From: Hyalangium minutum
Lineage (GTDB): Bacteria; Myxococcota; Myxococcia; Myxococcales; Myxococcaceae
NCBI RefSeq assembly: GCF_000737315.1
Contig: NZ_JMCB01000002.1
Coordinates: 310,001 to 374,000 of the forward strand
Reading direction: 5' to 3'
Length of the DNA stretch: 64,000 bases
The position numbers and the translations under genes were made by a program. Position 1 is the stretch's first letter; each line of letters begins with the position of its first letter. This document shows, in pieces, positions 6,999-22,211 of the stretch. Under the pieces are notes generated by a model. The model searched no databases and was not told the DNA's origin. It saw nothing but the letters and a program-made list of their open reading frames with translations.

Positions 6999-7005
6999 CT
7001 CGGGA

Positions 7006-7030
7006 TGGAGGCGGCGGGAATCGAACCCGC
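7006..7030 (-). repeat. tmRNA(ssrA)-like 3' end copy 1 (att-like core)
   Basis: Reverse complement GCGGG-TTCGATT-CCCGC-CGCCTCC-A gives a T-arm, a 3' acceptor strand with U70 (Ala identity) and discriminator A; no 5' half present. Confidence 0.75.
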
Positions 7031-7061
7031 CGCCGAGCGAGAACACAACCTGTGCATCAGG

Positions 7062-9350
7062 TTACGGCGTGGGGCCGCCGAGGAGCGACGCCAGGCGCTG
7101 CGCGAGCCGCGTGCGGGCCGCTTGAACCTGCGCATCCGTCTTCGCCGTGTCGTAGGGCGCCGGGAAGAGGCTTCGCGCGATGTCCTGCGCCTCGGTGCCG
7201 TAGCCCAGCCGGCGCAGCTGCTCGAGGTACTCGTAGTCCTCGTAACCATCGCGCACGTTCTTCATCCGAACCGACTCGATGGGGATGGGGTCCGTGCCTC
7301 CAATGCGGGCCACCGTCCCGGCGTACATCATGTTCCCGTCGCCGTTGCCCGTCGCGTAGTACTGGTCGTCCCAGGCATGGGGCAGGAGCATGGCCATGTC
7401 GTAGTAGAGCGTCCCCGTCAGCCGGTAGCGGAACGCCAGCCACGCCATGGCCCGGCTCTCCGAGGCGGGCGCATCAATCTCGAGCCCCGCCCAGCCGTTC
7501 GTATACGGTTTGTCATTTTCCACGCAGCCGTGGCTTCCGCAGGCGGCGTACATCCAGAGCTCCTTGGGCCGTCCCCCCGAGTTCTGGAGGAACGAGTCAT
7601 AGAGCGGTCGCTGGTCACCCGCGAACCAGGGACCACCGGCCGGCCCGTCCAGCAGCTCGACGTTGACGACCATGATGTCGGTCTTCTCCGTGCCCCCGTT
7701 CTCCTGTGCGCTCTGGATATGGGCGGTCACCATCCGGGGCGCTGCGGGCCAGGCCCTCTCGGCCTGCGCGAGGTAGTCCTTGCAGATCAACCAGTTGTTG
7801 TGGTCGTCGCCATACTTCGGGAAGAAGTGCGGCTCGTCGCACCCGTAGATGAAGGCGATGTTCTCGAACCCGTTCAGCCGCGCCTCTTCCTTCCACGCGC
7901 CCACGTCGTAGTTCTTGTGCATGTTCACCTGGTACGTGGTGAGCCGGGCGCCAGGGAGGCGAGTGGGCGCGGTGCCCTTGATGAAGGGCAGGGTATAGGT
8001 CCGGAACTCCTGGATGCCGGTGGTGCTGCCCGTCCGCAGGTTGGTGGCGTGCGCGCGCGCCGTGGTGATGCGGTTGTCGAGCGCCGAGCGAACGAACAGT
8101 TGCTTGGCCTTGGCGCGGGCGACGAGGTCGGTCTCACAGTTGGGCGTTCCGAGCTGGCACTCCATGCCCGGCGTGAAGCCGAACGAGCTCTTGAGCGTCG
8201 TGGTGGAGGGGAGCGTGAAGTTGAGCACCTTCAGCTCGACAGGGATGTTCTGCGACAGGTTCTCGGCCGTGAGCTGGAGGGTTCCCCGGTACACGCCCGC
8301 GGCGGCGTCGATGGGGACCAGCACGTCGACCCAGAGGGTCCGGTTCTCACCCGCGGGCACATCGACAGGGAACGCGTTTCGCGTCTGGCCCAGCAGCGGG
8401 TCGACCGCGGGGATGAGCGGATCCGGCCAGCGCCCCGTCGCCCCTTCCAGGTCAGACGGGGTGCGGACGTTGTAGTAGCCCTCGCGATACACGGTCACGT
8501 TCCGGCTCGGGATGACGGCGCCGTTAGGGCCGGTGAGCGGCCCGGAGAAGGACGCGCGAAGCCCGCGCAGCGGCGCGCTCGGTGCCTTGACGACGACCTG
8601 GAACGACTCGAACTCGTTGCGAGCCGCGAAGATGGCAGCACGGGACGGGCCCTCAGGCATCTCTTGGGGACGCACCTTCACCGCCGAGCCGAGCACGACG
8701 TAGTTCGAAGGCATGCCCACCTCTACGTAGGCGGCCCGGATGTTGGCATCGGGGCCACCGAGGCTGCGGAAGCGCAGGCGCAGGTCATCCAGCTCCAGCC
8801 GCTGGCCGACTTTGAAGCGGACCGACCGCCAGCCGAACCCCGCCGTCGCGGGGACGAGGACACTGGCGCGCACCTGGCTGCCCGTGACGGCCTCCACGCG
8901 CACCTGCGTCCCAGCGCCGGTGTTGCCGTAGAACCAGGCAGTCACCTCTCCCGGATCGCCGCGGTACATGGACGGGTTCTGCAGGCTCACCTCGGTGACC
9001 TGATCCGCTCCGCCCGCCCAGAGATAATCGTTGTCAGCAGAGACGGCGGCCGGCTGCGTGACCGGCTCGTCGAGCTTCTCCCAGGCGCTGCCCGTGTCGC
9101 CGGTGCGCCATCCGGACTGGACGGTGCCATCCGGGCGGAGGGCCTGACTGGTGACCAGCGCCTCCTGGACCATTCCTGGCTGTTCGGTATCGGCTGTCAC
9201 CGGGGCAGAGGGTTGTTCGGCGTCACCTGCCCCCGGGTCGAGCGGCGGTGAGCCGTCGCCTGCCATCGGGTCGAAGCCCTCGCCACACGACGTCAGCAGC
9301 AGTAAGGCAGTCACAACAGAGAGTGAGAGGGCGCCGAGCCGGCTCCGCAT
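7062..9350 (-). CDS. Lipoprotein with DUF4091 / GH123-like glycoside hydrolase domain
   Basis: Lipobox LTSC; AARNEFESFQVV, YGCDEP, G.LYY, GNGDGNMMY, ESVRMKNVRDGYEDYEY motifs. Confidence 0.85.
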   Translation of the reverse strand: MRSRLGALSLSVVTALLLLTSCGEGFDPMAGDGSPPLDPGAGDAEQPSAPVTADTEQPGMVQEALVTSQALRPDGTVQSGWRTGDTGSAWEKLDEPVTQPAAVSADNDYLWAGGADQVTEVSLQNPSMYRGDPGEVTAWFYGNTGAGTQVRVEAVTGSQVRASVLVPATAGFGWRSVRFKVGQRLELDDLRLRFRSLGGPDANIRAAYVEVGMPSNYVVLGSAVKVRPQEMPEGPSRAAIFAARNEFESFQVVVKAPSAPLRGLRASFSGPLTGPNGAVIPSRNVTVYREGYYNVRTPSDLEGATGRWPDPLIPAVDPLLGQTRNAFPVDVPAGENRTLWVDVLVPIDAAAGVYRGTLQLTAENLSQNIPVELKVLNFTLPSTTTLKSSFGFTPGMECQLGTPNCETDLVARAKAKQLFVRSALDNRITTARAHATNLRTGSTTGIQEFRTYTLPFIKGTAPTRLPGARLTTYQVNMHKNYDVGAWKEEARLNGFENIAFIYGCDEPHFFPKYGDDHNNWLICKDYLAQAERAWPAAPRMVTAHIQSAQENGGTEKTDIMVVNVELLDGPAGGPWFAGDQRPLYDSFLQNSGGRPKELWMYAACGSHGCVENDKPYTNGWAGLEIDAPASESRAMAWLAFRYRLTGTLYYDMAMLLPHAWDDQYYATGNGDGNMMYAGTVARIGGTDPIPIESVRMKNVRDGYEDYEYLEQLRRLGYGTEAQDIARSLFPAPYDTAKTDAQVQAARTRLAQRLASLLGGPTP

Positions 9351-9523
9351 GCAGTCTGATCCTTTGCGCTTTGTATGTGTGTGCTGCCGAACACCTCCCT
9401 TTGCGCGGTGTATTTCCCCGGCGGCTGCTGGCTGGGATTGCGGGTGGGCAACGCCTCATGAGCGCGCTTGGCGCGAGGCGGTACGACCGGCTGTTCGCTC
9501 GATGGGTGAGCGATCAACCTCAG

Positions 9524-10204
9524 TCAGGGCTCGGCCCACTGCCTGAGCAGGTTGTGGTAGATGCCCGTCAGCATGACCAGGGAGGGGCTCTTGGGCACCT
9601 CCCGGGTGAGCTGCATGATCGACGTGTCGAGGTCGAAGAGCAGCGCTCGCTTGCTCACATCGCGAATCATGCTCTGCACCCAGAAGAAGGAGGCCAGCCG
9701 CACTCCTCGCGTCACGGGCGTGACGTGGTGCAGGCTGGAGGCGGGGTAGATGATGAGATCCCCCGCCGGCAGCTTCACCGAGTGGCTGCCATACGTGTCC
9801 TCCACGACGAGCTCTCCCCCGTCGTAGCTCTCCGGGTCGGAGAGGAAGAGCGTCGCCGAGACGTCCGTGCGCAAGCGCAGCGGCGTCCCGGTGATCGGAC
9901 GGATGGCATTGTCCACGTGCGAGCCGAAGTTCATCCCCGGCTCGTAGCGGTTGAACAGCGGCGGGAAGACCCGCTGCGGCAACACCGCCGAGATGAACAG
10001 GGGGCTGCGCTCGAGCGCCCCCAGCACCAGATCCCCCAGCATCCGCGCCGCCGGGCTGTTCTCCGGAAGCTGCAGGTTCTTCTTCACCTGTGCTGACTGG
10101 TGGCCGGCCGTGCTGCGGCCGTCCTCCCAGTCAGCTCGGGCGAAGGTCTCCCGGCAGTGGGTCACCTGCTCGGCGGTGAGGACGTGGGGGATGTGCACCA
10201 ACAT
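9524..10204 (-). CDS. piuC: PKHD-type Fe(II)/2OG hydroxylase (PiuC/YbiX)
   Basis: FNRY...[35 protein letters not shown]. Confidence 0.93.
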
Positions 10205-10206
10205 GG

Positions 10207-12555
10207 CTAGAACCGGTACTTGCCGGACACGCTGACCGTGCGGCCCTCCGCCGGAACCGCGTGCCCTGCGTAGTACTGCGAATAGTAGAGCGCGTTCGTC
10301 AGGTTGTTGAGGTTGAGCTGCACCTCTACCTTGCCCCAGTGGTAGCCCGCCACCGCGTCGAAGCGCCAGTAGTTGGGCACCTTGAGGAAAGCGACCGTCG
10401 CGGAGGCCGGGTTGTTGACCGTCGTCACGCTCTGATAGATGGCGCCGCCTCCCAACGTGAGGTTCTCGATGACCTCGTAGGTCGTCCAGAGCGAGAGGCT
10501 GTTCTTCGGAGTGTTCGGCAGCGGCTGGCCTTCCAGGTAGTCATTGCTGTGCTCCAGGATGGCCGAGTAGATGTGCGTGAAGTTCGCGAACAGCCGCAGG
10601 CGCTCGGTCACGGTGCCGGCCACGCCCACGTTGTAGCCCTCCGCGCGCTGCCGGCCCGCCAGGATCTGCGGAGGCCCGCTCGGATCCGTGTTCGGCACGC
10701 GCGCATTCCTCTTGTCGATGCGGAACACCGCCGCGCTCAGCCCCAGCCGGTCCTCCAGGAGGTCAGCCTTGGCGCCCGCTTCGATGATCCGGTTCTTCTC
10801 GGGCTCGAGGCTCTCGGTGGCTGCATCGAGCGTCCCGGCCTCCGCGGACGGATTGGCGGAGGTGCCATACATGGCATAGACGCTCGTCTTCTCCAGCGGG
10901 TGCAGCACGAGCCCCGCGCGCCAGTTGAGGAAGGTGTCCTTGTTCTCCAGGTGGGTGACGGCTCCCGCGTTGTTCGTCGAGGCGTAGTCCGTGCTGAAGA
11001 TGTCGTAGCGCAGTGAGCCGACGAGCTCGAGGTATTGGGTGATGCCGAGCTGCTCCGACGCATAGAACGCCAACGTGCGCTGGATGCCCGCGTTGCTGGT
11101 GGAGAAGACTCGGTCGACCGAGGAAAGGTCCGGCGTGGGGTTCGGATCAAACAGATCCGCGGGCAGGTTCGTGCCCGAGGGAAGGCCTTGCGCCAACAGA
11201 TTGTAGCGGCGCTGTTCCCGCGTCTCCCGGGACCACTCGAGCCCGATGTTCGCCGTGTGCTTGGCGATACCGGTCTCGAACTCTCCGCGCAGATCCAACT
11301 GGTCCACCAGATAGGTGTTGTCCGTCGCGGTCTCGAAGCGCTGCCGTCCAATCGTGGTGGGAGCCCCGGCGGGCGTCAGGCCGCGCGGCGCCGTGGGCCG
11401 GGCGAACCGATCCACGCCGCCGTAGCGCAGCGTGTTCGTCAGGCTTAGGGCGGGGCTGAACTGGTGCTGGATACGGCCCGTGGCGATGTGGGCGTTGACC
11501 CGCTCCGTGTCCGAGTCCTGCACGCCGTAGAACGTCTCTCGGGGGACTTCCAGGGTGTTCGAGACCGGGTAGCCGTTGAAGTAGGGCTCACCGTAGTCCG
11601 GGACACTGTCCTCTCGCTGGTAGAGGTAGTCGAACTCGAGCGAGGTGCGCTCCGCCAGCGCGAAGCGCAGCGAGGGGGCGATGCCCGCGCGGTTGGCCTT
11701 CACCACGTCGCGGTCCGCCACATCCGCCAGCTGCCCCGTCGCGTTGATGCGGACCTGGAAGCGCTCGGAGACCGCCTCGTTCACGTCCAGCGCCAGCCGC
11801 CCCGACGGCGCCGTGCCCGCCGTGAGCGACAGTTCCTGGAAGGACCTGCGCTGAGGCTTCTTCGTGGCGAGGTTGATGGCCCCTCCCGTCGAGCCTCGGC
11901 CGAAGAGCACGGCGGAGGGCCCGAAGTAGACCTCCACTCCCCCCAGGTTGAAGGTGTCTCGCGTGTACCAGCCGATATCGCGCACGCCGTCGCGGCTCAC
12001 GTCCGTCTGCGCCGAGAAGCCGCGGAGGATGAAGGAGTCTCCCTGCCGGCCGCCCTCGCCCGCGCTGACCGTGATTCCCGAGACGTTGCGCAAGGCCTCG
12101 CGAACCGTCGTCGCCTTCTGCTCCTCGAGCACCTTCTCCGGGACCACCGTGACGCTCTGAGGCGTGTTGATCAGCGGCGTGGGCAGGCGCGTGAGGTTGC
12201 TCTCCTCGACGCGGTAGGTCTCGGCCTCGCCCTGCACCTGGACCGTCGGCAGCACGAACTGGCCCTCGGTCCCCGCCGAATCCTGGGGCGCTGCAGCGGG
12301 AGCCGCCGTCGCTGGCGCCTCGGGCTGGGGCTGCGCGGGGAGTCCCGCCGGCTGCGGTGGAGGCGTGGAGGGACGCTCCTCGGTCACGGGCGGCGCGGCA
12401 GGTGCCGCGGCCTCCTGGGCGAGCGCTCCAGGGGTGATCAGCGCGGACGCCAGTCCGACGGCCGCAGGCCCCCAGGGACGCACCACCCCGCGCAAGCCTC
12501 CCGCGGTGCCCTTCGTCGAGCGAATGCCCGTGCCACCCTTCTTTGACGCTCCCAC
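10207..12555 (-). CDS. TonB-dependent siderophore receptor (Fiu/PiuA-like)
   Basis: Plug motifs [30 protein letters not shown]; C-terminal F; probable GTG start at 12555 (the ORF-track extension runs through a Fur-like box). Confidence 0.92.
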
Positions 12556-12579
12556 GTTTACCCCGCTGTTGGCGTTAAT

Positions 12580-12598
12580 TGTGATTTTGATTCTCAGT
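12580..12598. promoter_or_regulatory. Fur-like box upstream of the TBDR (imperfect)
   Basis: AT-rich tgtgattttgattctcagt shares the GATTCTCA half-site with the 14763 box. Confidence 0.5.
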
Positions 12599-12667
12599 TG
12601 CAAGAAACGGCCGGAGGCTGTCCAGCTCCTGCTTCAAGAAGAGGCGGAGGCGGGTTCAGCTCCTGCT

Positions 12668-13918
12668 TCAGGAAACGACCGGAGGCTGTTCCAGCTCCTG
12701 CTCCGTGGTCGCCACCGTGGACCGGCGGCGGAAGAAGCGCCGCCAGGAGAGGGTGAAGCCGGTCCACATCAGGAAGGCTCCCGCCAAGGAGGCCACTCCC
12801 GCGACGAGCTGGCCCGCCCACCCGAGCGCCTGTCCCGTGTGCAGGAAGCGCAGCCAGGTGCGGATCTGCCGGCCACTGTTGTAGTCAGCGAAGGTCTCCC
12901 GGCGCAGCACCTCCGCCGTGAAGGGATTGAGCGAGAGCTGCGCGGAAGCGAAGAGGGGCCATCCTCCCTGCTCCTTGATGGAGAAGGTCATGGCCTGCGG
13001 CCCGCGTGGACCTCCTTCGCGCGGGGCTCCTTCGCGTGGGCCACCCTCGCGCTGCCCTCCAGGCCGGGGGCCTCCGCCCATGCGCAGCGAGATGCTCTCC
13101 CAGGCGGGCACCTGCTTCTGGGCCTCCGCGAAAAGCGCGTCGACACCCAGGGGCGTGGCACCGGGAGGCGGCTCGGGCACCTTGACTGCGGTCTGCCCGA
13201 ACGGGCCCGAGTTGGCGGGCGGCTCATTCCCGGTGAGTGTGAAGATGAGGTCCGAGACCGCCTTGTAGGACATGACCACGCCCGACGCGGTCAGGACGAC
13301 GAGGATGGGCATGGCCCAGAAGCCCGCCGCGTTGTGCCAGTTGAAGTCTCGCGCCTTGCCCTTCAGCCCGCCCTTGAACCAGAGGACCGGGCGCACCGTC
13401 TTCCACGTCCACCTGCGAGGCCACCAGAGGTACAAGCCAGAGACAGCCAGGAACAGGAAGGCCGCATTGCAGACGCCGGTGACTCCTCGGCCCAGTGCGC
13501 GATGGTCCTCGGAGGTGGCCAGCCACCGGTGCAGTTCTTCCATTTGATGCAAGAAGGCACGCAGCCCTTTTCCTCCCTGCTCCCGGACGTCGCCCGTGTA
13601 GGGGTCCACGTAGACGCCGCTCCCGCGGCCCGTGCTCACCAGCACGGCGGACTCCGGATCGGCGTACACCGTCACGCCTTGAGGCTGCACCCCAGGCTTG
13701 GCCGCGCGCACTCGCGCCAACAGCTCTTCCACGGGGAGGCGGGCGGCTCCGGACGGGGGGGGCTGCACCTGCCGGGCCTCGCGATCCGCCCATTGCTCGA
13801 GCTGCGGCTCGAAGGCGAGCGCCGCTCCCGTCAGCGACATGAGGCCGATGATGATCCCAGCCACGAGGCCGGAGACCAGGTGCATCCAGAAGAGGATCGT
13901 GCGGAAGGTGCTTTTCAT
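12668..13918 (-). CDS. PepSY-associated TM domain protein (PiuB-like)
   Basis: FWMHLVSG, SLTGA, YVDPYTG, LHRWL, SGLYLWWP, WHNAAG, LHTG. Confidence 0.9.
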   Translation of the reverse strand: MKSTFRTILFWMHLVSGLVAGIIIGLMSLTGAALAFEPQLEQWADREARQVQPPPSGAARLPVEELLARVRAAKPGVQPQGVTVYADPESAVLVSTGRGSGVYVDPYTGDVREQGGKGLRAFLHQMEELHRWLATSEDHRALGRGVTGVCNAAFLFLAVSGLYLWWPRRWTWKTVRPVLWFKGGLKGKARDFNWHNAAGFWAMPILVVLTASGVVMSYKAVSDLIFTLTGNEPPANSGPFGQTAVKVPEPPPGATPLGVDALFAEAQKQVPAWESISLRMGGGPRPGGQREGGPREGAPREGGPRGPQAMTFSIKEQGGWPLFASAQLSLNPFTAEVLRRETFADYNSGRQIRTWLRFLHTGQALGWAGQLVAGVASLAGAFLMWTGFTLSWRRFFRRRSTVATTEQELEQPPVVS

Positions 13919-13919
13919 G

Positions 13920-14681
13920 TCACTTGAGGGAGAACTGGACGGGGATGTCGACGATCACTCGCACCAGCCGGCCGTGCCGTCCGAGGGCGGGGGAGAAGCG
14001 CCACTGACGGACGGCGGCCAGGGCGGCCGCGTCGAGCTCCGGCACCGAGCGGATGATGCGCAGGCTCTCGGGTTCGACGCGCCCATCGATCCCAATGATG
14101 ATGCGGACCAGGACCAGCCCCTCGATGCCTTGGGAGCGGGCCGGCCGGGGATATTGAGGGAGGACCTGCTGGAGCACGGTGGGCGGACGCGACACCTGCT
14201 TCACGTCAACCGCCTCGCCGCCCGAGGCGACTCCCAGCCCCGTGCCAACACCTTCCTTCGCAGCGGAGTTCACGAGGCCCGCGACCACCGCTCCCATCGC
14301 TCCGGTTCCCGCCGCGGACTCAGGCTCTTCGAGGGCAGGGGCTTCCTCCTGCGGGGCTTGCTCCACTTCTTCAGGGACGGGCGCCTTCTCCGGCAGGGGC
14401 GCTGGCACCTGCGGTGGCGGCTTGAGACGAGCAGGGCGTGCACGGGCCCTGGTCATCACTCGCTGGGGCACTGCCGCTGGCGCGGCAGGGGCCGGGGCCG
14501 CCGCAGGGGGCGCCATGAAGGTGAGGAGTACCAACGGCGGGTCCTCGGGAGGTGGCGCTGTCTGCGGGGAGAGGCGGGGAACCCAAAGCACGGCCAAGAC
14601 CGCCCCGACGTGGACGAACGCGGCGATCATCAAGGCCCATCCCCAGCGCTCCCAGTCGCTCGCCCCAGCCGCATGGCCCAT
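13920..14681 (-). CDS. tonB: Energy transducer TonB
   Basis: N-terminal TM helix with His, Pro-rich linker, C-terminal PQYP..AR..GIEG.V...WRF.PA; ATG 14681 preferred because the longer start overlaps the Fur box. Confidence 0.85.
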   Translation of the reverse strand: MGHAAGASDWERWGWALMIAAFVHVGAVLAVLWVPRLSPQTAPPPEDPPLVLLTFMAPPAAAPAPAAPAAVPQRVMTRARARPARLKPPPQVPAPLPEKAPVPEEVEQAPQEEAPALEEPESAAGTGAMGAVVAGLVNSAAKEGVGTGLGVASGGEAVDVKQVSRPPTVLQQVLPQYPRPARSQGIEGLVLVRIIIGIDGRVEPESLRIIRSVPELDAAALAAVRQWRFSPALGRHGRLVRVIVDIPVQFSLK

Positions 14682-14762
14682 GCGGAAGAGCCCCGCTGCG
14701 TCTCTCGCGCCCGCTCTCTGCGCGAGGGCCGGACCCTGGCCGTACGGTTCGAAAGGCGTGAT

Positions 14763-14781
14763 ATTGAGAATCGTTCTCAAT
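14763..14781. promoter_or_regulatory. Fur-like 19-bp palindromic box
   Basis: attgagaatcgttctcaat, a near-perfect 19-bp dyad about 80 bp upstream of the tonB-pepSY-TBDR-piuC run. Confidence 0.75.
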
Positions 14782-14916
14782 TTCATTGCTCCCACAAGTA
14801 TCTTGGGGGAGCGGTTGCGTCAACCCTGCCTGGATCAAAATGGTTGGCGCGGGACGAGGGAGGAAGTCCATGCCTACTGCGAGTGTTCTGATCACCCGAA
14901 CTTGGGGTGAAGACCT

Positions 14917-15978
14917 TCAGGGCTTGGGGACAAAGCCGAGCAAGGTCCGGGGGAACTTGTCAGTCACCAGCAGGAAGCCCCGGTCCTCCAGCCGCACCAC
15001 GCCCTCCCAGTTCCGGGCTGCTTCATTGGAGAGCTGGAGCTGAAGGGGTGGCCTGTCTGTGAGCACGATGCCGCCTGGAGTGACTTGGAGTTCGATGAGC
15101 CGTTCCACCTGGGGCTTCTGCGCTTGGGTCGGTCCGGTGCCATACCGGGCCATGAGCGGATCCGGCGCCGGCTTGAAGTGTTTCTGAGTGCCTGGGTAGT
15201 TGTAGTTCATCACCCAGAACCGGCCCGTCGCATCCAGCGAGGTGGCATCGGTGATGCGGTACTCGATCGCGGGCAGCGTGAGCTTTCCGGAATGGCCCAA
15301 CGAGCCATCGAAGCTCTCGGCGGCCGGCGCCGGGTTCACACGGGCCCCATTCGCTTCGTACAGGGCCAGCACCCGGTTCTCGCCTACCACCAGCGCCTCG
15401 AAGCCCGCGTTCGATACGTCGGCTGGCAAGGGCAGAACCGCCTGAGGTGAAGCCTCGAGCTTCAGCACGCTCAGATCCGGCGCGATGCGGCCGGTGACCA
15501 GGAACGCCTTCCCGGCGAGCCGGTGGGTCTCCACGGTCAGATACGCCTGCTCCCCGGAGAAGCCGAGCGCCTCGTAGCCTTCAAAGCCGGTGATGCGCTT
15601 CTCGAGGCCGCCGCTGTCGAACACGATGCAGCGAGGCTCCAGCGGCCCCGTCGCGGTGTGATCGATCCGCGCGAGGAGTTCCGCTTTCGAGACGGTGTAG
15701 AGGCAGGCGGGGCCGTCATCCTCCCAGCCGGGATATTGCGGCAGCATGACGAGGTGATCGCCGTACCACGCGAGCCCCGAGAGCTCGGCGTCTTCGCTCT
15801 GAAGCGCGCCACCCAGGGGCAGGAGGGTGACGATTTGCTCCGGCGCTGTCCCCCGTAACGCCGGAGGCACATCCGCTAGAGCCACCGGCTGGGAAGAGCT
15901 CGAGACACACCCGGCCATGGCCAGGGAGAGAACGAGCGCGCGAACCGTCCAGCGCACCTGGTTTCTGTCTCGTGTCAT
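14917..15978 (-). CDS. Hypothetical lipoprotein, probable beta-propeller
   Basis: Lipobox MAGC; repeated ELSGLAW / GYEAL / GFEAL / NWEGV blades resembling SdiA-regulated or phytase-like propellers. Confidence 0.7.
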   Translation of the reverse strand: MTRDRNQVRWTVRALVLSLAMAGCVSSSSQPVALADVPPALRGTAPEQIVTLLPLGGALQSEDAELSGLAWYGDHLVMLPQYPGWEDDGPACLYTVSKAELLARIDHTATGPLEPRCIVFDSGGLEKRITGFEGYEALGFSGEQAYLTVETHRLAGKAFLVTGRIAPDLSVLKLEASPQAVLPLPADVSNAGFEALVVGENRVLALYEANGARVNPAPAAESFDGSLGHSGKLTLPAIEYRITDATSLDATGRFWVMNYNYPGTQKHFKPAPDPLMARYGTGPTQAQKPQVERLIELQVTPGGIVLTDRPPLQLQLSNEAARNWEGVVRLEDRGFLLVTDKFPRTLLGFVPKP

Positions 15979-16008: not shown

Positions 16009-17022
16009 TCAGGCGCGCTCGAAGCGGACCTGCGCACGGCTCATCACGTGCTCCACCACCAGCAGGTGCCACGCCACTTGATCGATGCGCGCCATCTGCT
16101 GGGGCTCGGCGCGCAGGGACTGCGCCAGCTCCTCCATCGTCACTCCCGCCGCGGCCGCATGCTCTCGAAGCAGCGCCTCCACGCGCTCGGGAGTCAGGGT
16201 GAGCCCGTCCCGCTCGCGGATGGCGGCCAAGGCCAGGCCGATCCTCAGCCGGTTCTCCACTTCGGCGCGGGTCCGTGCGTCGCGAAGCCAGGTCTGGAGC
16301 GACTCCTGCTGCTGCTCCGGGGAAAGCTCCAGCTCGCGGACGGTAATGCCCTCGCTGGCGTTCCAGCGCGCGATGATTTCCCGGTCGATGAGCTCGGGAG
16401 GAACCTTCACCTCGGTGCGCGCGGCCACCTCGTCCAGCACCCGCTGCTGGGCCAGGAGCCCCAACTGCTGCACCGTCTCTTGCTCCATTTGCTGGTACAC
16501 GCTGCGCATGGCCTCCGCCAGGGTCGCGCCGCGGCCCAGCGCTTGGAGGAACTCCGGGCTCTCCAGATCGGGGTACGTCACCTGGCGCGCTGCGTGGATT
16601 TGAACCATGAAGCGGGCGGGCATGTTGCGCAGCGTCTCGACGGGGTAATCGGCCGGCAACGTGACGTCCACCGCCACGGTCTTGTTGGGGGTGTGGCCAA
16701 CGAGGGCCTCGTACAACCCGGGGAGCTGGGGCTCGGGCAGCAGGGGCAGCCACACCTCTTTGCGGGCACTGAAAGGCACGAGGCGGCCGTTCGAGAAGCC
16801 CACGATGCTCAGCAGCACCTCGTCCTTCCAGGCCACCGGCTCGTTGGGGTACCGGTAGCGCTCGTTGGCGAGCGGTCGCGCCAGCTCGAGGAAGCGCTGC
16901 TGGACTTGCTCCGCGGTGAAATCCTTGGGGGCGGGGACCGTGACTTCCAGTCCCTCCAGGGAGGGCGCCTTGGCCCGAGGCAGCTTCGCCTCGGCCAGAT
17001 CGGGAACAACGAAGCGACTCAT
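16009..17022 (-). CDS. Trigger-factor-like protein (FKBP-like plus C-terminal chaperone domain) lacking the ribosome-binding domain
   Basis: Begins at the PSLEGLEVTVP linker; LPGLYEALVG, FPADY-like LPADYP, VKVPPELIDREI, RLRIGLALAAI; no GFRxGxxP motif; 337 aa. Confidence 0.8.
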   Translation of the reverse strand: MSRFVVPDLAEAKLPRAKAPSLEGLEVTVPAPKDFTAEQVQQRFLELARPLANERYRYPNEPVAWKDEVLLSIVGFSNGRLVPFSARKEVWLPLLPEPQLPGLYEALVGHTPNKTVAVDVTLPADYPVETLRNMPARFMVQIHAARQVTYPDLESPEFLQALGRGATLAEAMRSVYQQMEQETVQQLGLLAQQRVLDEVAARTEVKVPPELIDREIIARWNASEGITVRELELSPEQQQESLQTWLRDARTRAEVENRLRIGLALAAIRERDGLTLTPERVEALLREHAAAAGVTMEELAQSLRAEPQQMARIDQVAWHLLVVEHVMSRAQVRFERA

Positions 17023-17070: not shown

Positions 17071-18096
17071 TTAGCCGTTCTTCTTCGGGAGGAACGCACC
17101 GACGAGGGAGGAGACCGCCGAGATCCCCGCGCCCACCTGCGAGACGATGGGGATGTTGGTGGCGGCGGCGACGGAGCCCGCGGCCGAGATGGTGGAGGTC
17201 ACCTTGGCGCCCGTGGAGGACTTGGGGTCCGCCCAGGTGCGCGCCGCCTGGCCGACGTCCAGCGCCGCCAGACCGATGTTGAGGCCCGGCACGAAGCGGC
17301 CGGCCACCTTCGCCGCGGTGCCCGCGCCCTTGGCGCCCGCCTTCACGCCATCCAGCGCCGCGTCGGCCGCCTGGGTCACTTTGGCCGCGTTGCCCGCGCC
17401 GCCCGCGGCCTTCTCACCCGACTTGATGACCTTGCCCTCGATCTTCCCGGCCAGCCCGCCCAGGTGCCCCTTGTGCAGCAGCTCCGCCACGGCCATGCCG
17501 GCGCCGGCGATCCCGCCCTTGATGGCGCTCTTGTCCTTGAGGACCGAGGCCATCGCGTCCGCGTGGCGCAAGGGCCCGCCCTTGTGAGCGGCCTCGGCGG
17601 CCGCGTTGGCCACCGCGCCCGACAGCGGGCCGGCCTTGCCGCCCACCAGGTCCTTGGCCACCTGACCCAGCTTGTCGAAGCTCTTGGCGGAGGAGAAGGC
17701 GGCGGCAGTCTCGAGCGCGCCCTTGGTGGTGCCCAGCACGCCGCGCGCCAGGCCCATGGCGTTCTCCGCGATGGCATGGCCGTCACCGCTCTTCACCGCC
17801 TGCGCCAGCCCGTTGGCGTTGGTGCCGATGCCGACGACGCCGCCCGCCAGGCCCGCGGCGCCCAGGCCCCGGCCCGCCAGGCCCGTGCCACCGTTGTGGT
17901 AGTTCTGGGTCATCGTCTTCCCCGGAGAGAAGAAGTCCTTCGCGTTGAAGGGGGCGGTGGGCGGCTTGACGGTGGTGGCCGGGGGAGGAGACAGCGGCTT
18001 GGCCTTGTCCAGCGCAGGCTTGGTGAAGTCCGAGGAGGGCGTGGTGGTGGAGGGCTGGGGACGGGGAGCAACGGGGCTGGAGTTGATCGTGGTCAT
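17071..18096 (-). CDS. Gly/Ala/Lys-rich hypothetical protein with S/T/P-rich N-terminus and hydrophobic glycine-zipper segments
   Basis: ATG with GAGG RBS; strong G/C third-position bias; no Sec signal peptide visible. Confidence 0.75.
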   Translation of the reverse strand: MTTINSSPVAPRPQPSTTTPSSDFTKPALDKAKPLSPPPATTVKPPTAPFNAKDFFSPGKTMTQNYHNGGTGLAGRGLGAAGLAGGVVGIGTNANGLAQAVKSGDGHAIAENAMGLARGVLGTTKGALETAAAFSSAKSFDKLGQVAKDLVGGKAGPLSGAVANAAAEAAHKGGPLRHADAMASVLKDKSAIKGGIAGAGMAVAELLHKGHLGGLAGKIEGKVIKSGEKAAGGAGNAAKVTQAADAALDGVKAGAKGAGTAAKVAGRFVPGLNIGLAALDVGQAARTWADPKSSTGAKVTSTISAAGSVAAATNIPIVSQVGAGISAVSSLVGAFLPKKNG

Positions 18097-18164
18097 GGCG
18101 GCATCCTCGGAGTGGCGGGGGGCTTGGAAGGGGTGGGAGTCAGTGGCTGACGGACATGAGCATT

Positions 18165-18181
18165 AGCAGGAGGTGTGCCAA
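18165..18181 (-). promoter_or_regulatory. Sigma54 (-24/-12) promoter
   Basis: Minus strand tTGGCACacctcCTGCT, GG-N10-GC, about 70 bp upstream of ATG 18096. Confidence 0.75.
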
Positions 18182-18289
18182 CGCCCCCTGCATCCCACAG
18201 TGGCCCCCTAACCCAGCCATTTTCCAAGAGAAGCGCTCGAGAGCCACCGGCTTGGGGGGCTTCTGGTTTACTTCCCTGGCGGGCTTCCC

Positions 18290-18357
18290 GGGACTCCAGT
18301 CATCAGCCGAGGCCCCTTTACCGTGGGACTCCAGTCATCGGCTGATGAGTCCAGTCA
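18290..18357. repeat. Direct/inverted repeat cluster, candidate enhancer-binding-protein sites
   Basis: gggactccagtcatc at 18290-18304 and 18325-18339; 11-bp inverted repeat 18300-18310/18338-18348; extra tccagtca at 18350. Confidence 0.6.
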
Positions 18358-18474
18358 CCAAGCGGGACTCGAGGCGGGTGGCGGGCTCGGCCAGGAAACT
18401 GGATACGGCAGAGTGGACATGGGTTGGATGAGCCCTGAGTCTCGCCAGTCATTGGCTCACCCCCGAGGCATCTC

Positions 18475-20775
18475 TTGAAAACTCTCTCCCGGCACCTGTT
18501 CTGGGTGCTCGCGCTGGCGTTGCTCGCGAGCTGCTCTGCGTCTTCTCCCGCCCCTGGCGCTGCCCAGTTCGCTGTCTCCCTCCCCCAGGCCCTCTCCTCC
18601 AGCGACGTGACCCGTATTCGGGTGACGGTCTCCGCCTCCGATATGGAGGCCCTCTCCGTCGAGCTCGCCAAATCCAACGGTGCCTGGGGAGGCCTCATCG
18701 GCAATCTCCCCGCGGGCGCCAACCGCTCCTTTCTCGCCCAGGCCTTCGACTCCTCCGGCGCGCTCCTCTTCCAGGGCCAGACGTCCGGCGTCTCCATCGC
18801 TCCCAACCAGACCACCGCCGTCGCCCTGACCCTCCAACAGGTGTCTGCGCCTCCTCCCTATGGCAACGAGGCTCCCATCATTGACTCCCTCGTCGCCTCG
18901 TCGACCTCTGTGCTCACCGGTGGCGCTCTCTCCCTGACGGCCACCGTGCATGATCCCAATCCTGGCGACACCCTCACCCTGAACTGGACAGCCTCCGGCG
19001 GCTCCTTCTCTGCGCCTTCCGCTCTGGACACGTCCTGGACGGCGCCTGCTTCCGCGGGCATCCAGACCCTCATCCTCACGGTGACCGACTCCCAGGGGGC
19101 TGCTGTCTCTGTCTCCCTGGCGGTCAACGTCTCCAGCGCCTCCACGGGCAACGCCGCCCTGAACATCTCCTTCAACCTCTGGCCCACGGTCTCCCGGGTG
19201 TCGGCCTCCCTGAGCCGCCTCGACGCAGGACAGTCCACCACTGTCTCTGTCTTGGCCTCCGATGGGGATGGCGATGGCCTGTCCTACCAGTGGACTTCTT
19301 CTTGCCCGGGCACCTGGACGGACGCCTCCTTCAGCACGGCCTCCTTCGTCCCTTCCTCGGTGCCGGCCGGTGCGTGTAACAACTGCCAGCTCACCGTCAC
19401 CGTCCAGGACAGCCGGGGAGGGCAGACCACGGGCTCCCTCGCCTTGTGCGTCGCTTCCGCTTCCATGGAGCGCTTCCCCCCGCGCATCTCCCATCTCTAC
19501 CAGTCCGCCACCTCCACCGCTCCGGGCCAGACGGTCACCTTCGAGGTCACCGCCCTGGATCCCCAGGCCAGCTCCCTGACGTTCACGTGGAGCGCTACCA
19601 CTGGCTCCCTGGGCACACCGGTGAACGGCGCCTCCTCCAGCCACGTCACCTGGACGGCCCCCTCCTGTGCCTCCGGCGGCATGACCCCTGGCATTACCGC
19701 CACCGTCACCAACGCCTTCCACCTCTCCGCCACACAGAATTTCCGGGTGGAAGGAGTGCCCGCCTGTCCTTCGGGATGGACCTCGACGCAAGCCATGAGC
19801 TTGCCTCGCTACCACCACACGGCGACGCTGCTGCCCAACGGCAAGGTCCTCGTCGCGGGTGGAGTCTTTGTCAGCGCTCATGCGATGGCCGAGGTCTATG
19901 ACCCGGCCTCGGGCACTTGGAGCGCGACGGGCTCCATGGCCCAGGGTCGTTACATCCACACGGCGACGCTGCTGCCCAATGGCAAGGTCCTCGTCACGGG
20001 TGGCTCCAACGGCGTGGCGTCCTTGGCGACGGCGGAGGTGTATGACCCAGCCTCGGGCACCTGGAGCGCGACGGGCCCCATGGCTTCGCCTCGCAGCGAG
20101 CACACGGCGACGCTGCTGCCCAATGGCAAGGTCCTCATCGCGGGCGGATACACGAACCCGGGCACCCATTCCTCCAGTTCCCTGGTGACGGCGGAGGTGT
20201 ACGACCCGGCCTCGGGCACCTGGAGCACGGCCGGCGCCATGGCCACGCCTCGATCCGTCCACACAGCGACGCTGCTGCCCAACGGCAAGGTCCTCGTCAC
20301 GGGGGGCTCGAACAGCGATTTCCTGGCGACAGCGGAGGTGTACGACCCGGCTTCGGGCACCTGGAGCACGGCCGGCGCCATGGCCTCGCCCCGCCGGTAC
20401 CACACAGCGGCGCTGTTACCCAACGGCAAGGTTCTCATCGCGGGCGGATACAGCAGCCCCATCTTCGCGACGGCAGAGGTATACGACCCGGTCTCGGGCA
20501 CCTGGAGCATGACGGGCTCCATGGTCACACCCCGCTACCTCCACACGGTGACGCTGCTGCAAAGCGGCAAGGTGCTCGTCGCGGGGGGAGCCAATGGCCT
20601 CAACCACAGGGAAGCGGAGGCATATGACCCGGCTTCAGGCACCTGGAGTGCGGTCCCTTCCATGATCCATGTCCGCCGCAGCCACGCGGCGGCGCTGCTG
20701 CAAGACGGCAGGGTTCTCATCTCCGGCGGATATAATGGCGGTGGTTTCCCAGATGCGGAGCTGTACTCACCCTGA
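18475..20775 (+). CDS. Lipoprotein with Ig-like/PKD repeats and Kelch beta-propeller (paralogue of 4238..6490)
   Basis: TTG start, lipobox LASC; six HTATLLPNGKVL..GG...AEVYDPASGTW units; shared CNNC motif. Confidence 0.9.
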   Translation: MKTLSRHLFWVLALALLASCSASSPAPGAAQFAVSLPQALSSSDVTRIRVTVSASDMEALSVELAKSNGAWGGLIGNLPAGANRSFLAQAFDSSGALLFQGQTSGVSIAPNQTTAVALTLQQVSAPPPYGNEAPIIDSLVASSTSVLTGGALSLTATVHDPNPGDTLTLNWTASGGSFSAPSALDTSWTAPASAGIQTLILTVTDSQGAAVSVSLAVNVSSASTGNAALNISFNLWPTVSRVSASLSRLDAGQSTTVSVLASDGDGDGLSYQWTSSCPGTWTDASFSTASFVPSSVPAGACNNCQLTVTVQDSRGGQTTGSLALCVASASMERFPPRISHLYQSATSTAPGQTVTFEVTALDPQASSLTFTWSATTGSLGTPVNGASSSHVTWTAPSCASGGMTPGITATVTNAFHLSATQNFRVEGVPACPSGWTSTQAMSLPRYHHTATLLPNGKVLVAGGVFVSAHAMAEVYDPASGTWSATGSMAQGRYIHTATLLPNGKVLVTGGSNGVASLATAEVYDPASGTWSATGPMASPRSEHTATLLPNGKVLIAGGYTNPGTHSSSSLVTAEVYDPASGTWSTAGAMATPRSVHTATLLPNGKVLVTGGSNSDFLATAEVYDPASGTWSTAGAMASPRRYHTAALLPNGKVLIAGGYSSPIFATAEVYDPVSGTWSMTGSMVTPRYLHTVTLLQSGKVLVAGGANGLNHREAEAYDPASGTWSAVPSMIHVRRSHAAALLQDGRVLISGGYNGGGFPDAELYSP

Positions 20776-20814
20776 AGACATTCAAGCGGGGCAGAGCCGA
20801 GGCCGGGCTCTGTG

Positions 20815-20834
20815 TGGAGGCGGCGGGAATCGAA
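20815..20834 (-). repeat. tmRNA-like 3' end copy 2 (att-like core)
   Basis: tggaggcggcgggaatcgaa, a 20/20 match to 7006-7025. Confidence 0.7.
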
Positions 20835-20859
20835 GGCGTGCTCATCTGCTTGAAAGGAC

Positions 20860-21594
20860 GTGGCCATGCGTTTCCGAACGTGCAGCGCACTCCTGTTTCT
20901 CCTCTCGGCCTGCGCCACGACAGAGCCGAGCATCGGAGAACTGGAGGGCCCTGATCCGAGGTTCGCCAACCTTCAGCGGGCGGCGCAGTACCCCTGGACG
21001 GATGACGGGCATTGCGTGGTGCGGGAAGCCTCTCACGAATGGCCGATTCTGGCGGAGCGGTGCTTTCACGCTCTCGATCACGACAGGGTCAAGTTTCGGG
21101 ATGTCGCCGGAAGATGCGCTGTCGCCTCTGCGGGTGCGGCGGCCGTAGGCGTGGGGCTCTGCGTCTTTGTGGCACCCGAGATCATTGTTGGAGCGGTGAT
21201 CATCGCTGGCGTTGTCGTGGTGGCTGTTGCCATCAAAGGCGAGTTGGATGCATACGAGCGAAGGGCATCTCGTGATCGTGCGAGGACCGAGGCTCAAACA
21301 CGGCCATCCCATGAGCAGGAGCCCTCGGCGAATCGAAAGCCCAGCCCCAAAAATCAACCCGACCCCGAGAGACGCCCGAAGCCGTTCATTCACCCCAATC
21401 CCACTCCGGAGGAACGGGAGGAATGGAGGAAGCGGTGTCTTGACTATTACGTGCGCTGTAGCGAGTTCGTGAAAGGGGATAAGCAGTGGCGCGTCTTCGG
21501 GGAGCGCCAGTGTCAATCGTGCTGGTTGCTTTGCGAGCGTACAGGTCAGTGGCCAGCAGAAGCGAACGAGAGACCCTGCCCAGGAGGTGATTGA
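20860..21594 (+). CDS. Lipoprotein, putative polymorphic toxin (SitA-like architecture) with Cys-rich C-terminus
   Basis: Lipobox LSAC; hydrophobic GVGLCVFVAPEIIVGAVIIAGVVVVAVAI segment; Pro/charged linker; 6 Cys in the last ~55 aa. Confidence 0.7.
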   Translation: MAMRFRTCSALLFLLSACATTEPSIGELEGPDPRFANLQRAAQYPWTDDGHCVVREASHEWPILAERCFHALDHDRVKFRDVAGRCAVASAGAAAVGVGLCVFVAPEIIVGAVIIAGVVVVAVAIKGELDAYERRASRDRARTEAQTRPSHEQEPSANRKPSPKNQPDPERRPKPFIHPNPTPEEREEWRKRCLDYYVRCSEFVKGDKQWRVFGERQCQSCWLLCERTGQWPAEANERPCPGGD

Positions 21595-22085
21595 CCGTGA
21601 GGCGCACGCGCGAAGACTGGTGGAAGAGCGTCGCTGAGCGACGCGACGATCACTTGATCAAGCTCTTGAAGGCCAAGGCGCCCTGGCCGGACTTCAAGCA
21701 GGCGATCCGTGCTCAAGAGGCAGAACTGATCCGGGAGGCGCAGACGCCCGTTGAACGGCGGCACATCCAACAGCTTTCCATGCCGGTGCTGCTGACCGAG
21801 GCTTACGCGAGGGGTCTTGAGTGGGACGAATTTGGCCCACTGGTGCGCCGTATTCAGCGGCTCGGCTACGCAGACATGACCCACCGGATCCACGTGGCGT
21901 GTCTCTTTGTCCAATCATTGCCCCGTTTTCCAGAGCGAGCCCGGCAAGCGTTCGCCATGCTTGATGGAGTGGAGGGGAGCCTCAAGCGCATCCGCAAGAG
22001 TCACTACCTACGTAAAGAAGGGATGGAGGGTATAGCCCATGCGCGCGCTGTGGCGGCAGCCGCTGGCATTTCATCGCCAAAGTAG
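21591..22085 (+). CDS. Putative immunity protein (164 aa, helical)
   Basis: TTGA overlap with the upstream lipoprotein stop, GGAGG RBS; small cytoplasmic protein with no signal peptide. Confidence 0.6.
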   Translation: MTVRRTREDWWKSVAERRDDHLIKLLKAKAPWPDFKQAIRAQEAELIREAQTPVERRHIQQLSMPVLLTEAYARGLEWDEFGPLVRRIQRLGYADMTHRIHVACLFVQSLPRFPERARQAFAMLDGVEGSLKRIRKSHYLRKEGMEGIAHARAVAAAAGISSPK

Positions 22086-22139
22086 GTGATCCAGAAGTAT
22101 GGGACATGGCACCATCTGCGGCTTGCGCCATACGTGCAC
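22086..22139 (+). pseudogene. Decayed tyrosine integrase C-terminal motif
   Basis: gtg atc cag aag (t) atg gga cat ggc acc atc -14 nt- tac gtg cac reads VIQK.MGHGTI.....YVH, matching integrase IQELMGH.TI...RY.H with two frameshifts. Confidence 0.45.
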
Positions 22140-22186
22140 CATGGATGGAGGAAGCCGCTAACCATCCGTAGCCACGGAGTGAAAAG

Positions 22187-22211
22187 TGGAAGCGGCGGCA
22201 ATCGAACCCGC
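22187..22211 (-). repeat. tmRNA-like 3' end copy 3 (degenerate att-like core)
   Basis: tggaagcggcggcaatcgaacccgc, a 23/25 match to 7006-7030. Confidence 0.65.

Follow-up and report, generated by a model that had tools for sequence, protein, structure and literature searches.

The analysed window, a 64-kb stretch of DNA, carries three fragments that match the 3' end of ssrA, the tmRNA gene. They lie on the same strand, are 20-29 nt long and are bounded by genes other than ssrA. We suggest that they are attachment-site scars left by tyrosine-integrase elements that recombine in the T-loop of tmRNA, including at places other than ssrA, and we put the probability of this reading at roughly 0.7. 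Two of the fragments have integrase relics beside them, a sister strain departs from the window at the edge of these same two, and related genomes hold a multi-copy family of such cores.

A scan of the window for the 20-mer TGGAGGCGGCGGGAATCGAA gave exact matches at 7006-7025 and 20815-20834 and a match with two mismatches at 22187-22206. All three are on the + strand in one common orientation, whereas 100 dinucleotide-preserving shuffles gave 0 matches and the chance expectation is 0. The scan thus confirms the three same-orientation copies that an earlier note on this DNA had listed. TGGAGGCGGCGGGAATCGAA is the reverse complement of the ssrA 3' end in Hyalangium-like myxobacteria, so the cognate gene would be on the minus strand with its body toward higher coordinates. 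True ssrA genes of relatives encode the tag ANDNVELALAA and have the 3' end ...GGACGCGGGTTCGATTCCCGCCGCCTCCA. Where TGGAGGCGGCGGGAATCGAA occurs within RNA genes of other DNA, the gene is always tmRNA and never tRNA, which bears out the proposed descent from the tmRNA 3' end; tRNA-Ala as the origin of the fragments was rejected for the same reason. The block of identity starts with the T-stem 5' strand in copies 1 and 3 and with the first T-loop base in copy 2, and in all three copies it stops at the discriminator base. Copies 1 and 3 are equal at 23 of 25 positions. Duplication of a segment made up of a Kelch gene and a core was also considered and rejected because the flanks of the copies fail to align.

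There is no ssrA nearby, as the earlier note had stated. ARAGORN found 0 tRNA and 0 tmRNA genes in the whole 64-kb window and Rfam gave 0 matches at the gathering score. The sole weak match to the Rfam tmRNA model (RF00023) is the T-arm and acceptor strand of copy 1, which score 17 bits against a gathering score of 47. With RF00023 and ARAGORN, no tmRNA 5' acceptor strand, tag reading frame or pseudoknots were found in the window. The orthologous crt-TIGR01777 loci of six relatives also hold no ssrA, and their homology to the window ends at 22241-22249.

The copy 1 core (7006..7034, minus strand) reads GGCGGCGGG-TTCGATT-CCCGCCGCC-TCCA in the tmRNA sense, with a perfect 9-bp inverted repeat flanking the 7-nt T-loop. 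It shares 25 identical nt with the true ssrA 3' end. Its left half has the element (attP/attR) form and not the ssrA form GGACGCGGG, and this palindromic left half was found in 0 real tmRNA genes among 57 metagenome contigs. In the classical scheme an element-form left half means that the GH123 side is element DNA, so copy 1 could be a junction within a tandem array. Upstream of the core there is a short tmRNA-like arm (GTTCTCGCTC..., 7035..7050, minus strand) that looks like the arms of 'class d', with a 10-nt gap, at other copies; this arm is also present in the sister strain. Beyond the arm is a GH123-like gene (7062..9350, minus strand), the stop codon of which is 27 nt from the edge of the palindrome and 36 nt from the 20-mer. 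This gene is accessory and is present in other contexts elsewhere.

On its other side copy 1 is joined to the spacer (P' arm) of a family-I element (6938..7005, minus strand), with an intrinsic terminator that consists of a hairpin (6993..6972) and then TTTTTCTT. This spacer is also found after real ssrA genes that hold an integrated element and after the tRNA-Glu gene of M. stipitatus. Because it follows family copies, precedes the convergent integrase and also trails this tRNA-Glu gene, the terminator spacer is element-borne, and the reading of copy 1 as a native ssrA end with its own terminator was rejected. Next to the spacer is a family-I integrase relic on the + strand, convergent with the core. 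The last codons (6913..6937) are 88% identical to L055 5429-5546, and a further 35 codons (6804..6908) correspond, at 97% identity, to residues 256-290 of the intact L055 integrase. About 310 nt that include the catalytic motifs have been deleted and the N-terminal 255 codons are gone. A search of GenBank phages with the copy 1 region gave no match.

The copy 3 core (22187..22215, minus strand) reads GGAAGCGGG-TTCGATT-GCCGCCGCT-TCCA and matches the true ssrA end at 26 of 29 positions. Its host flank is a gene for a TIGR01777-family oxidoreductase of 301 aa (22245..23150, minus strand); the core is 27 nt behind the stop codon of this gene, and a canonical version of the core is found at the same place in the sister strain. 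Throughout the Myxococcaceae the TIGR01777 gene is a conserved chromosomal gene next to the crt cluster, and the DNA beyond copy 3 is a conserved TIGR01777-crtE-crtI carotenoid cluster, in agreement with the earlier description of this flank. Metagenome contigs searched with the TIGR01777-arm junction gave no match.

To the left of copy 3 there is a family-II relic (22121..22186, + strand) comprising the last ~17 integrase codons (22121-22171) and a spacer (22172-22186), with 76-84% nucleotide identity to L091, L143, L176, L202 and L215. It is preceded by a two-gene remnant of a family-II element with a low GC content of 61% (20866..22085, + strand). The first gene encodes a lipoprotein with the lipobox LSAC (20866-21594) and is overlapped by a 164-aa ORF (21591-22085). 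The intact element L215 is collinear with positions 20847-22211 of the window and holds a homologue of the lipoprotein gene, a DUF6310 lipoprotein gene to which the N-terminal part is 77% identical at the DNA level. PADLOC, PHROGs and NCBIfam gave no usable result for the ORFs between the copies.

Copy 2 (20815..20834, minus strand) is a bare half site. It consists of the T-loop, the T-stem 3' strand and the acceptor 3' strand, with 20/20 positions identical, and has no T-stem 5' strand, spacer or integrase. It is 40 nt from the stop codon of a gene for a Kelch/PKD repeat protein (Kelch-2, 18475..20775, + strand), which borders it, is convergent with the tmRNA sense and is common to the sister strain. 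On its other side, it is 13 nt from the start of homology to the intact family-II element. The sister strain lacks copy 2 through a deletion with a 9-nt overlap at the junction, and viral contigs searched with the right junction of copy 2 gave no match.

The integrase relic is thus strong at copy 1, weaker at copy 3 and absent at copy 2, and the earlier note was right to place relics beside two of the copies. The integrase family is phage-type (PF00589 and PF14659). The window holds relics only, and intact homologues occupy the same position in other genomes. Apart from the PF00589 and PF14659 relics, no integrase was found in positions 1-25 kb of the window.

The sister strain, ~94-96% identical to the window, matches it in genes, arms and cores at copies 1 and 3. 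Its locus L161 is homologous to positions 24467-22187 and its locus L162 to positions 9793-7007, and in both the homology stops exactly at the last base of the core, its 3' edge, with unrelated DNA beyond. The earlier expectation that strain breakpoints would lie at the cores is therefore supported in part, for copies 1 and 3. A search of the window for the DNA that follows the cores in the sister strain found none, so neither relic could be paired with an attR; further arms or spacers were likewise not found in the rest of the window. Six more distant relatives have no core behind TIGR01777, and copy 3 thus joins conserved host DNA that is core-less in these relatives, as would be expected of a secondary site. 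In one relative without cores a 353-aa gene and a GH123-like gene are located downstream of TIGR01777 in the same order. The closest strain already has full cores, and no empty secondary site predating any core was recovered. The next relative after the sister strain, L124, has unrelated sequence at the copy 3 site. Behind its TIGR01777 gene there is a weak resemblance by eye to the core (CGCCTCC...CAGCAA), which we do not claim as a core.

Related genomes each hold several cores on different contigs, mostly away from ssrA, although most of these counts come from draft assemblies and MAGs without coordinates and so do not strictly prove dispersal as opposed to long arrays. With this proviso, the dispersed family of recombination cores proposed earlier does exist. 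Some cores are directly behind ordinary genes; for example, the stop codon of nuoB is 14 nt from a core with an adjoining full-length integrase. True ssrA genes of relatives that hold an integrated element end in GGACGCGGGTTCGATTCCCGCCGCCTCCA and are followed by the same spacer and integrase as copy 1. In family I, the integrase gene is open and full-length in L129, L130, L146, L148 and L149; in L141 a full-length match is broken by a stop codon. DUF2381 is present in L130 and in L146, which also has an xis-type (HTH_17) gene and a Ser/Thr kinase. 

From these observations we infer that the crossover falls within the T-loop, that secondary sites are used and cores re-used, and how copy 2 arose, as follows. 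In attP, GGCGGCGGG and CCCGCCGCC would form a perfect inverted repeat on either side of the 7-nt loop TTCGATT, and behind it would come the remainder of the tmRNA 3' end, the spacer and the convergent integrase gene. On integration at ssrA the gene would be rebuilt from the copy carried by the element. In this lineage the same recombination may have taken place at, or been carried to, non-ssrA places in the chromosome. At 70% GC, this DNA is rich in the half-site 9-mer and in near-palindromes, such as those at 17161-17185 and 63182-63206 of the window, so there are plenty of candidate secondary sites. Copy 3 would then be an attL-type junction made up of the host TIGR01777 gene, the core, the family-II spacer and the integrase tail, and the 1.35 kb to its left would be what deletions spared of the family-II element. 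Copy 2 would be a half site on the far side of this remnant and most likely arose from later recombination or deletion. Copy 1 would be an attP/attR-type core, with its left half in the element form, that adjoins what decay has left of a family-I element's left end. After seeding, a core would be a complete target at which later elements could enter and leave, and such re-use would explain why the sister strain differs from the window from precisely the final base of cores 1 and 3 onward. Counting against this scheme, neither an empty secondary site predating the cores nor a matching attR was recovered, copy 1 could be a tandem-array junction, and copy 2 matches perfectly in its right half, unlike what is expected from integration into a merely similar pseudo-site.

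The single orientation of the copies, the position of the integrase relics on the expected side and the element-form left half of copy 1, as expected between two islands, would also fit an ordinary tandem island array at ssrA that was later detached by a chromosomal rearrangement, with no non-ssrA site ever used. Tandem arrays at tDNAs are well documented (PMC4383910). However, the upstream end of such an array would be the stop codon of TIGR01777, the crt linkage of which is family-wide, and the sister strain has the same junction. A random breakpoint would also need to land within ~10 nt of a tmRNA-like block, in other genomes cores of the same family adjoin different ordinary genes, nuoB among them, and the gene order downstream of TIGR01777 in the core-less relative counts against it as well. 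This suggests that a detached array is an unlikely origin. A repeated terminator module is a very improbable one. Here the core and hairpin spacer, derived from the tmRNA 3' end, would spread or persist by terminating the upstream gene, independently of any integrase. The distance from the copies back to a same-sense stop codon is indeed 9-120 nt, the core folds as a 9-bp hairpin with a canonical intrinsic terminator next to it, and about half of the 30 genome loci have no integrase match. Nevertheless, integrase sequence (full-length or relic) is continuous with the module on the expected side in about a dozen of these loci and at copies 1 and 3, copies 2 and 3 have no terminator spacer, and no target duplications or terminal repeats were seen.

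The earlier note had favoured a cassette-like system, in which the cores delimit cargo units without an integrase that are moved in trans by an integrase elsewhere. In other genomes there are core pairs in the same orientation 2.4-5.3 kb apart, and in four of these cases no integrase match falls between the two cores, although in L138 one core has a short integrase relic next to it. The DNA in between includes a helicase, an Imm11 immunity protein and a weak GIY-YIG match. The same genomes have intact integrases of the family, strain differences begin at cores, and the 1.35-kb interval that copies 3 and 2 enclose in the window is a module of two genes. This interval, however, is demonstrably a deleted self-integrating element, and the left half site is missing from copy 2. 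Rather than a clean unit, the 13.8-kb interval is a mosaic of ordinary genes, two of which are ordered alike in the core-less relative. Copies 1 and 3 each have their own integrase remains, which fits decayed self-integrating elements and lends no support to trans-mobilised cassettes. No circle junction and no empty/filled pair for a whole interval were found, and there is no integron-type integrase, attI or promoter. We therefore consider this system quite unlikely. The scars described here, probably of self-integrating elements, are a variant of ordinary island biology.

Island finders count a tRNA or tmRNA fragment as an island mark only if an intact gene is present at the other end. Here, tmRNA fragments conserved between sister strains mark recombination breakpoints behind ordinary genes, and strain-specific DNA starts at their edge. 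If integrases of this family routinely use or create ectopic sites, tDNA-anchored methods would miss part of the accessory genome of myxobacteria with large, GC-rich genomes, and the cores would be precise handles for strain-variable cargo, possibly including kin-discrimination genes. Should one old rearrangement account for the scars, the finding is a routine one. A bolder and doubtful extension is that tmRNA cores outside ssrA might form a standing network of complete landing pads in Hyalangium-like myxobacteria. Resident integrases would insert, swap and delete small, often integrase-less modules there (lipoprotein/partner pairs, immunity proteins and helicases), and the network would be a tmRNA-derived integron analogue that diversifies kin-recognition or defence cargo between strains.

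Myxobacteria are known to have prophage-like elements with polymorphic lipoprotein toxin/immunity pairs (Mx-alpha, sitAI; PMC5562445). The elements described here are likewise mobile and strain-variable, and their cargo is a lipoprotein gene with a small overlapping ORF downstream. As a further likeness, the C-terminal part of the lipoprotein differs from that of its L215 homologue. Unlike in sitAI, neither of the window's two ORFs gave a match to a SitA, toxin or immunity family, and a SitA-like reading of the lipoprotein/164-aa pair may be taken as a lead only. The cores resemble integron attC cassettes in that short hairpin-forming sites in one orientation have variable DNA between them and that an integrase could conceivably act in trans. 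In contrast with integrons, the integrase is phage-type (PF00589 and PF14659), and attI and a Pc promoter are absent. The sites are near-identical and tmRNA-derived, not variable attC hairpins, and copy 2 is unable to form a hairpin. With 2 ORFs in 1.35 kb and ~9 genes on both strands in 13.8 kb, the intervals also differ from cassettes of a single, usually promoterless ORF.

Genomic islands and prophages integrated at the tmRNA gene were reportedly described by Williams in 2003 under the title 'Traffic at the tmRNA gene'. Islands and prophages in tRNA and tmRNA genes, including tandem arrays, are recognized by the Islander signature (PMC4383910). The elements analysed here share with tDNA islands a tyrosine integrase, an attP that contains the 3' part of the target from the T-stem/T-loop, an integrase that in intact homologues lies beside the rebuilt end, displaced 3' fragments kept as direct repeats and decay by deletion. 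They differ in that no intact tmRNA gene bounds the copies, two cores are directly behind protein-coding genes and related genomes hold several cores unattached to ssrA. Phage integrases also use secondary (pseudo-attB) attachment sites, and She et al. are said to have described, in 2001, tRNA-fragment footprints of captured elements in archaeal chromosomes. In common with both, the copies appear to be integrase-made junctions outside the primary site, with short att fragments marking old integrations. In contrast with both, the ectopic sites here are nearly complete targets, with both half sites and the overlap, and could serve again.

The 20-mer TGGAGGCGGCGGGAATCGAA occurs three times in the window, each time on the + strand, without mismatch at 7006-7025 (copy 1) and 20815-20834 (copy 2) and with two mismatches at 22187-22206 (copy 3); from 100 shuffles of the window, 0 copies are expected. 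Read from the minus strand, TTCGATT-CCCGC-CGCCTCC-A, it supplies in turn the T-loop, the T-stem 3' strand, the acceptor-stem 3' strand (with the G3:U70 position) and the discriminator base. In the 64-kb window ARAGORN detects neither a tRNA nor a tmRNA gene, and Rfam gives nothing at gathering score; a weak Rfam tmRNA match at 7003-7146 aligns the T-arm and acceptor strand alone. The 20-mer search, ARAGORN and Rfam thus confirm the earlier note, which had described tmRNA 3'-end copies in one orientation with no ssrA in the window. To distinguish tmRNA from tRNA, 47 loci from 120 viral contigs carrying the 20-mer were run through ARAGORN, and all the RNA genes containing it were tmRNA and none tRNA. 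Genuine ssrA genes of Myxococcaceae/Archangiaceae (L134, L135, L144 and L154; tag ANDNVELALAA) end in ...TTTCGGACGCGGG-TTCGATT-CCCGCCGCCTCCA, with which copy 1 has 25 consecutive bases in common, copy 3 has 26/29 and copy 2 only the last 20. The data show that the three copies originate from the 3' end of ssrA. Their flanks do not align with one another.

The two substitutions of copy 3 (TTCGATTGCCGCCGCTTCCA, 22187-22206) recur exactly in a core, the tmRNA-derived block, of another MAG (L158, 2729-2748) that is followed by a different spacer, suggesting that this variant may be carried by an element lineage rather than reflect random decay. At stray cores elsewhere, ARAGORN reports 'tmRNA' genes with implausible tags (L133, 1451-1939; L153, 2520-2941; ARSDA and a 30-residue tag). 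These look like false positives set off by the core and call for caution in automatic ssrA annotation in this lineage.

The copies abut non-ssrA DNA, and at two of them the sequence runs on into decayed integrase genes, which belong to two related families. At copy 1, read in the tmRNA sense, the stop codon of the GH123-like gene (7062-9350, - strand) is followed by 27 nt, the last ~16 of which form a short tmRNA-like arm, and then by GGCGGCGGG-TTCGATT-CCCGCCGCC-TCCA, in which a perfect 9-bp inverted repeat surrounds the loop. Next come a 68-nt spacer containing an intrinsic terminator, the last codons of an integrase gene (reverse complement), a gap of ~310 nt relative to intact genes, and 35 codons that match L055 integrase residues 256-290 at 97% identity. 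In L055, L007, L091 and many genome loci, intact homologues of this family-I relic (402-406 aa, PF00589 and PF14659) occupy exactly this position and converge on the core. The palindromic GGCGGCGGG-TTCGATT-CCCGCCGCC is present on 57 metagenome contigs (41-71% GC), in 0 cases inside a tmRNA gene, and genuine ssrA has GGACGCGGG where this form has the element half. Because the palindrome never lies in a tmRNA gene on these contigs, the left half of copy 1 is, by its distribution, the element form of the site. Between the relic and the Kelch-1 repeat gene, window 6576-6715 is ~72% identical to L157 2872-3025, which directly follows a truncated family-I spacer whose integrase is wholly deleted.

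At copy 3, the stop codon of a TIGR01777 oxidoreductase gene is followed by 27 nt, by GGAAGCGGG-TTCGATT-GCCGCCGCT-TCCA and by ~65 nt matching the spacer and terminal integrase codons of family II (L091, L143, L176, L202 and L215) at 76-84% identity. An intact family-II element collinear with the window is L215, from a 253-kb metagenome contig; it contains a core, genes for a 406-aa integrase and an HTH_17 excisionase-like protein, another ~5 kb of genes, and genes for a DUF5953 protein, a DUF6310 lipoprotein, a DUF2381 protein and a Ser/Thr kinase. The window's own lipoprotein gene (lipobox LSAC) matches the N-terminal part of the lipoprotein gene in L215 at 77% DNA identity. This collinearity, together with the lipoprotein and integrase-tail homology, indicates that 20835-22186, a 1.35-kb stretch of 61% GC (window, ~70%) with two + strand ORFs, is a family-II element reduced by deletion rather than an autonomous cassette. 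Copy 2 lacks the T-stem 5' strand, the spacer and the integrase. It lies 40 nt behind the stop of the Kelch/PKD repeat gene Kelch-2 (18475-20775, + strand) and 13 nt from the start of the L215 homology; L215 has no core at the corresponding place.

The TIGR01777 protein (301 aa; closest named homologues in Hyalangium, 82-84% aa) is encoded to the right of copy 3, followed by crtE and crtI. We compared the orthologous loci of two Hyalangium sp. (L121, L128), H. gracile (L123), H. versicolor (L127), M. xanthus (L126) and a relative at 91% aa (L124). Homology to the window ends at 22241-22249 in all six, the genes downstream of TIGR01777 differ in each, and a tmRNA gene and a core (up to 4 mismatches allowed) are both absent from all of them. 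Between copies 1 and 2 the window carries the GH123-like gene, an iron-uptake-like block of TonB-dependent receptor, PepSY_TM and TonB_C genes (9401-14917), two ORFs without family match, a trigger-factor-C-like ORF (16012-17022, - strand) and Kelch-2. In L124, TIGR01777 is followed by a 353-aa gene and a GH123 gene (81-82% DNA identity) without cores, Kelch-2 or the TonB block, which argues that the 13.8-kb interval is a mosaic and not a unit. Another GH123 ortholog has a different gene context and no core. The two L124 genes are 100 nt apart where the 9401-14917 block is absent, and no cores or repeats were seen at the block's borders in the window. The trigger-factor C-terminal domain protein also matches a phage family of unassigned function (phrog_26774, E = 1e-18). 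The Kelch genes at 4016-6487 and 18475-20775 are paralogous Kelch/PKD/Big_9 repeat genes with repeat units 65-80% identical, and both stop shortly before a + strand core (516 nt from copy 1 and 40 nt from copy 2), an arrangement that may be chance or may reflect cargo common to the elements; core and Kelch repeats are also combined on metagenome contig L182. Window 566-661 (96 nt) matches L139 383-478 at 83% identity; the L139 stretch is ~150 nt away from a tmRNA-derived core in a Myxococcaceae MAG, and the reading frame of the window stretch (RQWTLSFPYRVRWVLLKEAG...) resembles, by eye, the N-terminal part of a candidate transposase.

A sister strain is represented by two contigs of one run (SRR33780596), ~94-96% identical to the window. 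The first (L161) is homologous to window 24467-22187 and, behind TIGR01777, shares the 27-nt arm, which leads into a canonical core; right after ...CCTCCA come an unrelated hairpin, a Pel9A-like gene and, further along, two short lipoprotein-gene remnants and Kelch-2. The copy 2 region is missing from this contig and the flanking window matches overlap by 9 nt at the junction. The second (L162), homologous to window 9793-7007, shares the GH123 arm and the core; unrelated DNA begins at the very next base. Each breakpoint falls on the 3' edge of its tmRNA-like block, showing that the strain differences begin at the edge of cores 1 and 3.

A scan of one genome per species with the core plus family-I spacer as query gave 30 loci, all in Myxococcaceae/Archangiaceae, only 4 of which are genuine ssrA genes. 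There are four core loci over three contigs in H. versicolor, five in one Hyalangium MAG and seven cores in five stretches in a MAG with two multi-Mb contigs. An integrase matches at full length at 8/30 loci, the L141 match being broken by a stop codon; 4/30 have relics, one real-ssrA locus near a contig end has a partial match, and the remaining loci have none. Upstream, the loci are flanked by one of a few recurrent arms or by unique sequence; the latter is often an ordinary gene's 3' end, such as that of nuoB (stop 14 nt from a core with an adjoining full-length integrase) or of genes for a GATase1-like membrane protein, a PNPOx protein and an LRR protein. Same-family integrases of M. stipitatus are ~72-79% identical to the H. 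versicolor query; one adjoins a tRNA-Glu gene, its spacer having the same terminator hairpin, and a second lies 0.88 Mb away at a site without any tRNA. In M. stipitatus (CP102770, at ~9.76 Mb; L160 5257-5300), an element with a same-family integrase ends at a tRNA-less site, where the last codons of the neighbouring SIMPL-domain gene look by eye like a candidate tRNA 3' end (TCGAGTCCGCGCGGTAGTCA). Known phages gave no DNA match and their integrases are <30% identical, so no close relative is among them.

Taking the anatomy of the sites together with the general scheme for tyrosine-integrase recombination, we infer that the 7-nt T-loop would serve as overlap region, with the 9-bp arms as core-type binding sites. 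At ssrA, integration would yield the ssrA left half, the loop and the element right half, followed by spacer and integrase. The cores behind TIGR01777 and GH123 may have arisen by the same reaction at a secondary site or by an integrase-made rearrangement, probably before the window strain and sister strain split. Candidate secondary sites appear plentiful: the 9-mer GGCGGCGGG occurs 16 times in the window (6.6 expected from shuffles), and near-palindromes with a 7-nt spacer outside the cores number ~3 per 64 kb (17161-17185, 24838-24862 and 63182-63206). A scar with both half sites and the loop would again be a full target, so that later entries, exits and deletions would occur on its 3' side. 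Copy 2 is best read as a product of further recombination or deletion sparing the loop and right half only, yet this is the weakest step of the mechanism.

A tandem array formed at ssrA and detached later would account for the copies having one orientation, for the relics and for copy 1 having a left half in element form. However, it requires a breakpoint within ~10 nt of a tmRNA-like block beside a gene whose linkage is conserved family-wide, and leaves cores behind other ordinary genes elsewhere unaccounted for; we consider it unlikely. The earlier note had proposed cassette-like units bounded by the cores, and this draws some support from same-orientation core pairs 2.4-5.3 kb apart in other genomes; four of these pairs have no integrase match between the cores, their contents being a helicase, an Imm11 protein and a weak GIY-YIG match. 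In the window, however, the small interval is a deleted element on the evidence of L215, the larger one a mosaic and copy 2 a half site only, and no unit-wise presence/absence was seen. That note is borne out in part, integrase relics standing at two copies as it said, but autonomous cassettes are quite improbable. A pure terminator repeat is contradicted by the continuity with integrase sequence and is very improbable indeed. Integrating elements that target tmRNA remain our preferred explanation; the locus is of moderate interest to mappers of mobile DNA and is otherwise ordinary island decay.

The window lipoprotein and its overlapping ORF recall the mobile sitAI toxin/immunity pairs of myxobacteria (PMC5562445) as a lead only, family searches of the pair giving no support for such an identity. 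The system is not an integron. It operates in the manner of islands and prophages whose integration into tRNA/tmRNA genes leaves 3' fragments behind (PMC4383910), but differs from their signature in having no intact target gene at one end. The data suggest a variant of such islands, in which elements target tmRNA and their att cores are retained, and apparently recombine, at ectopic sites.
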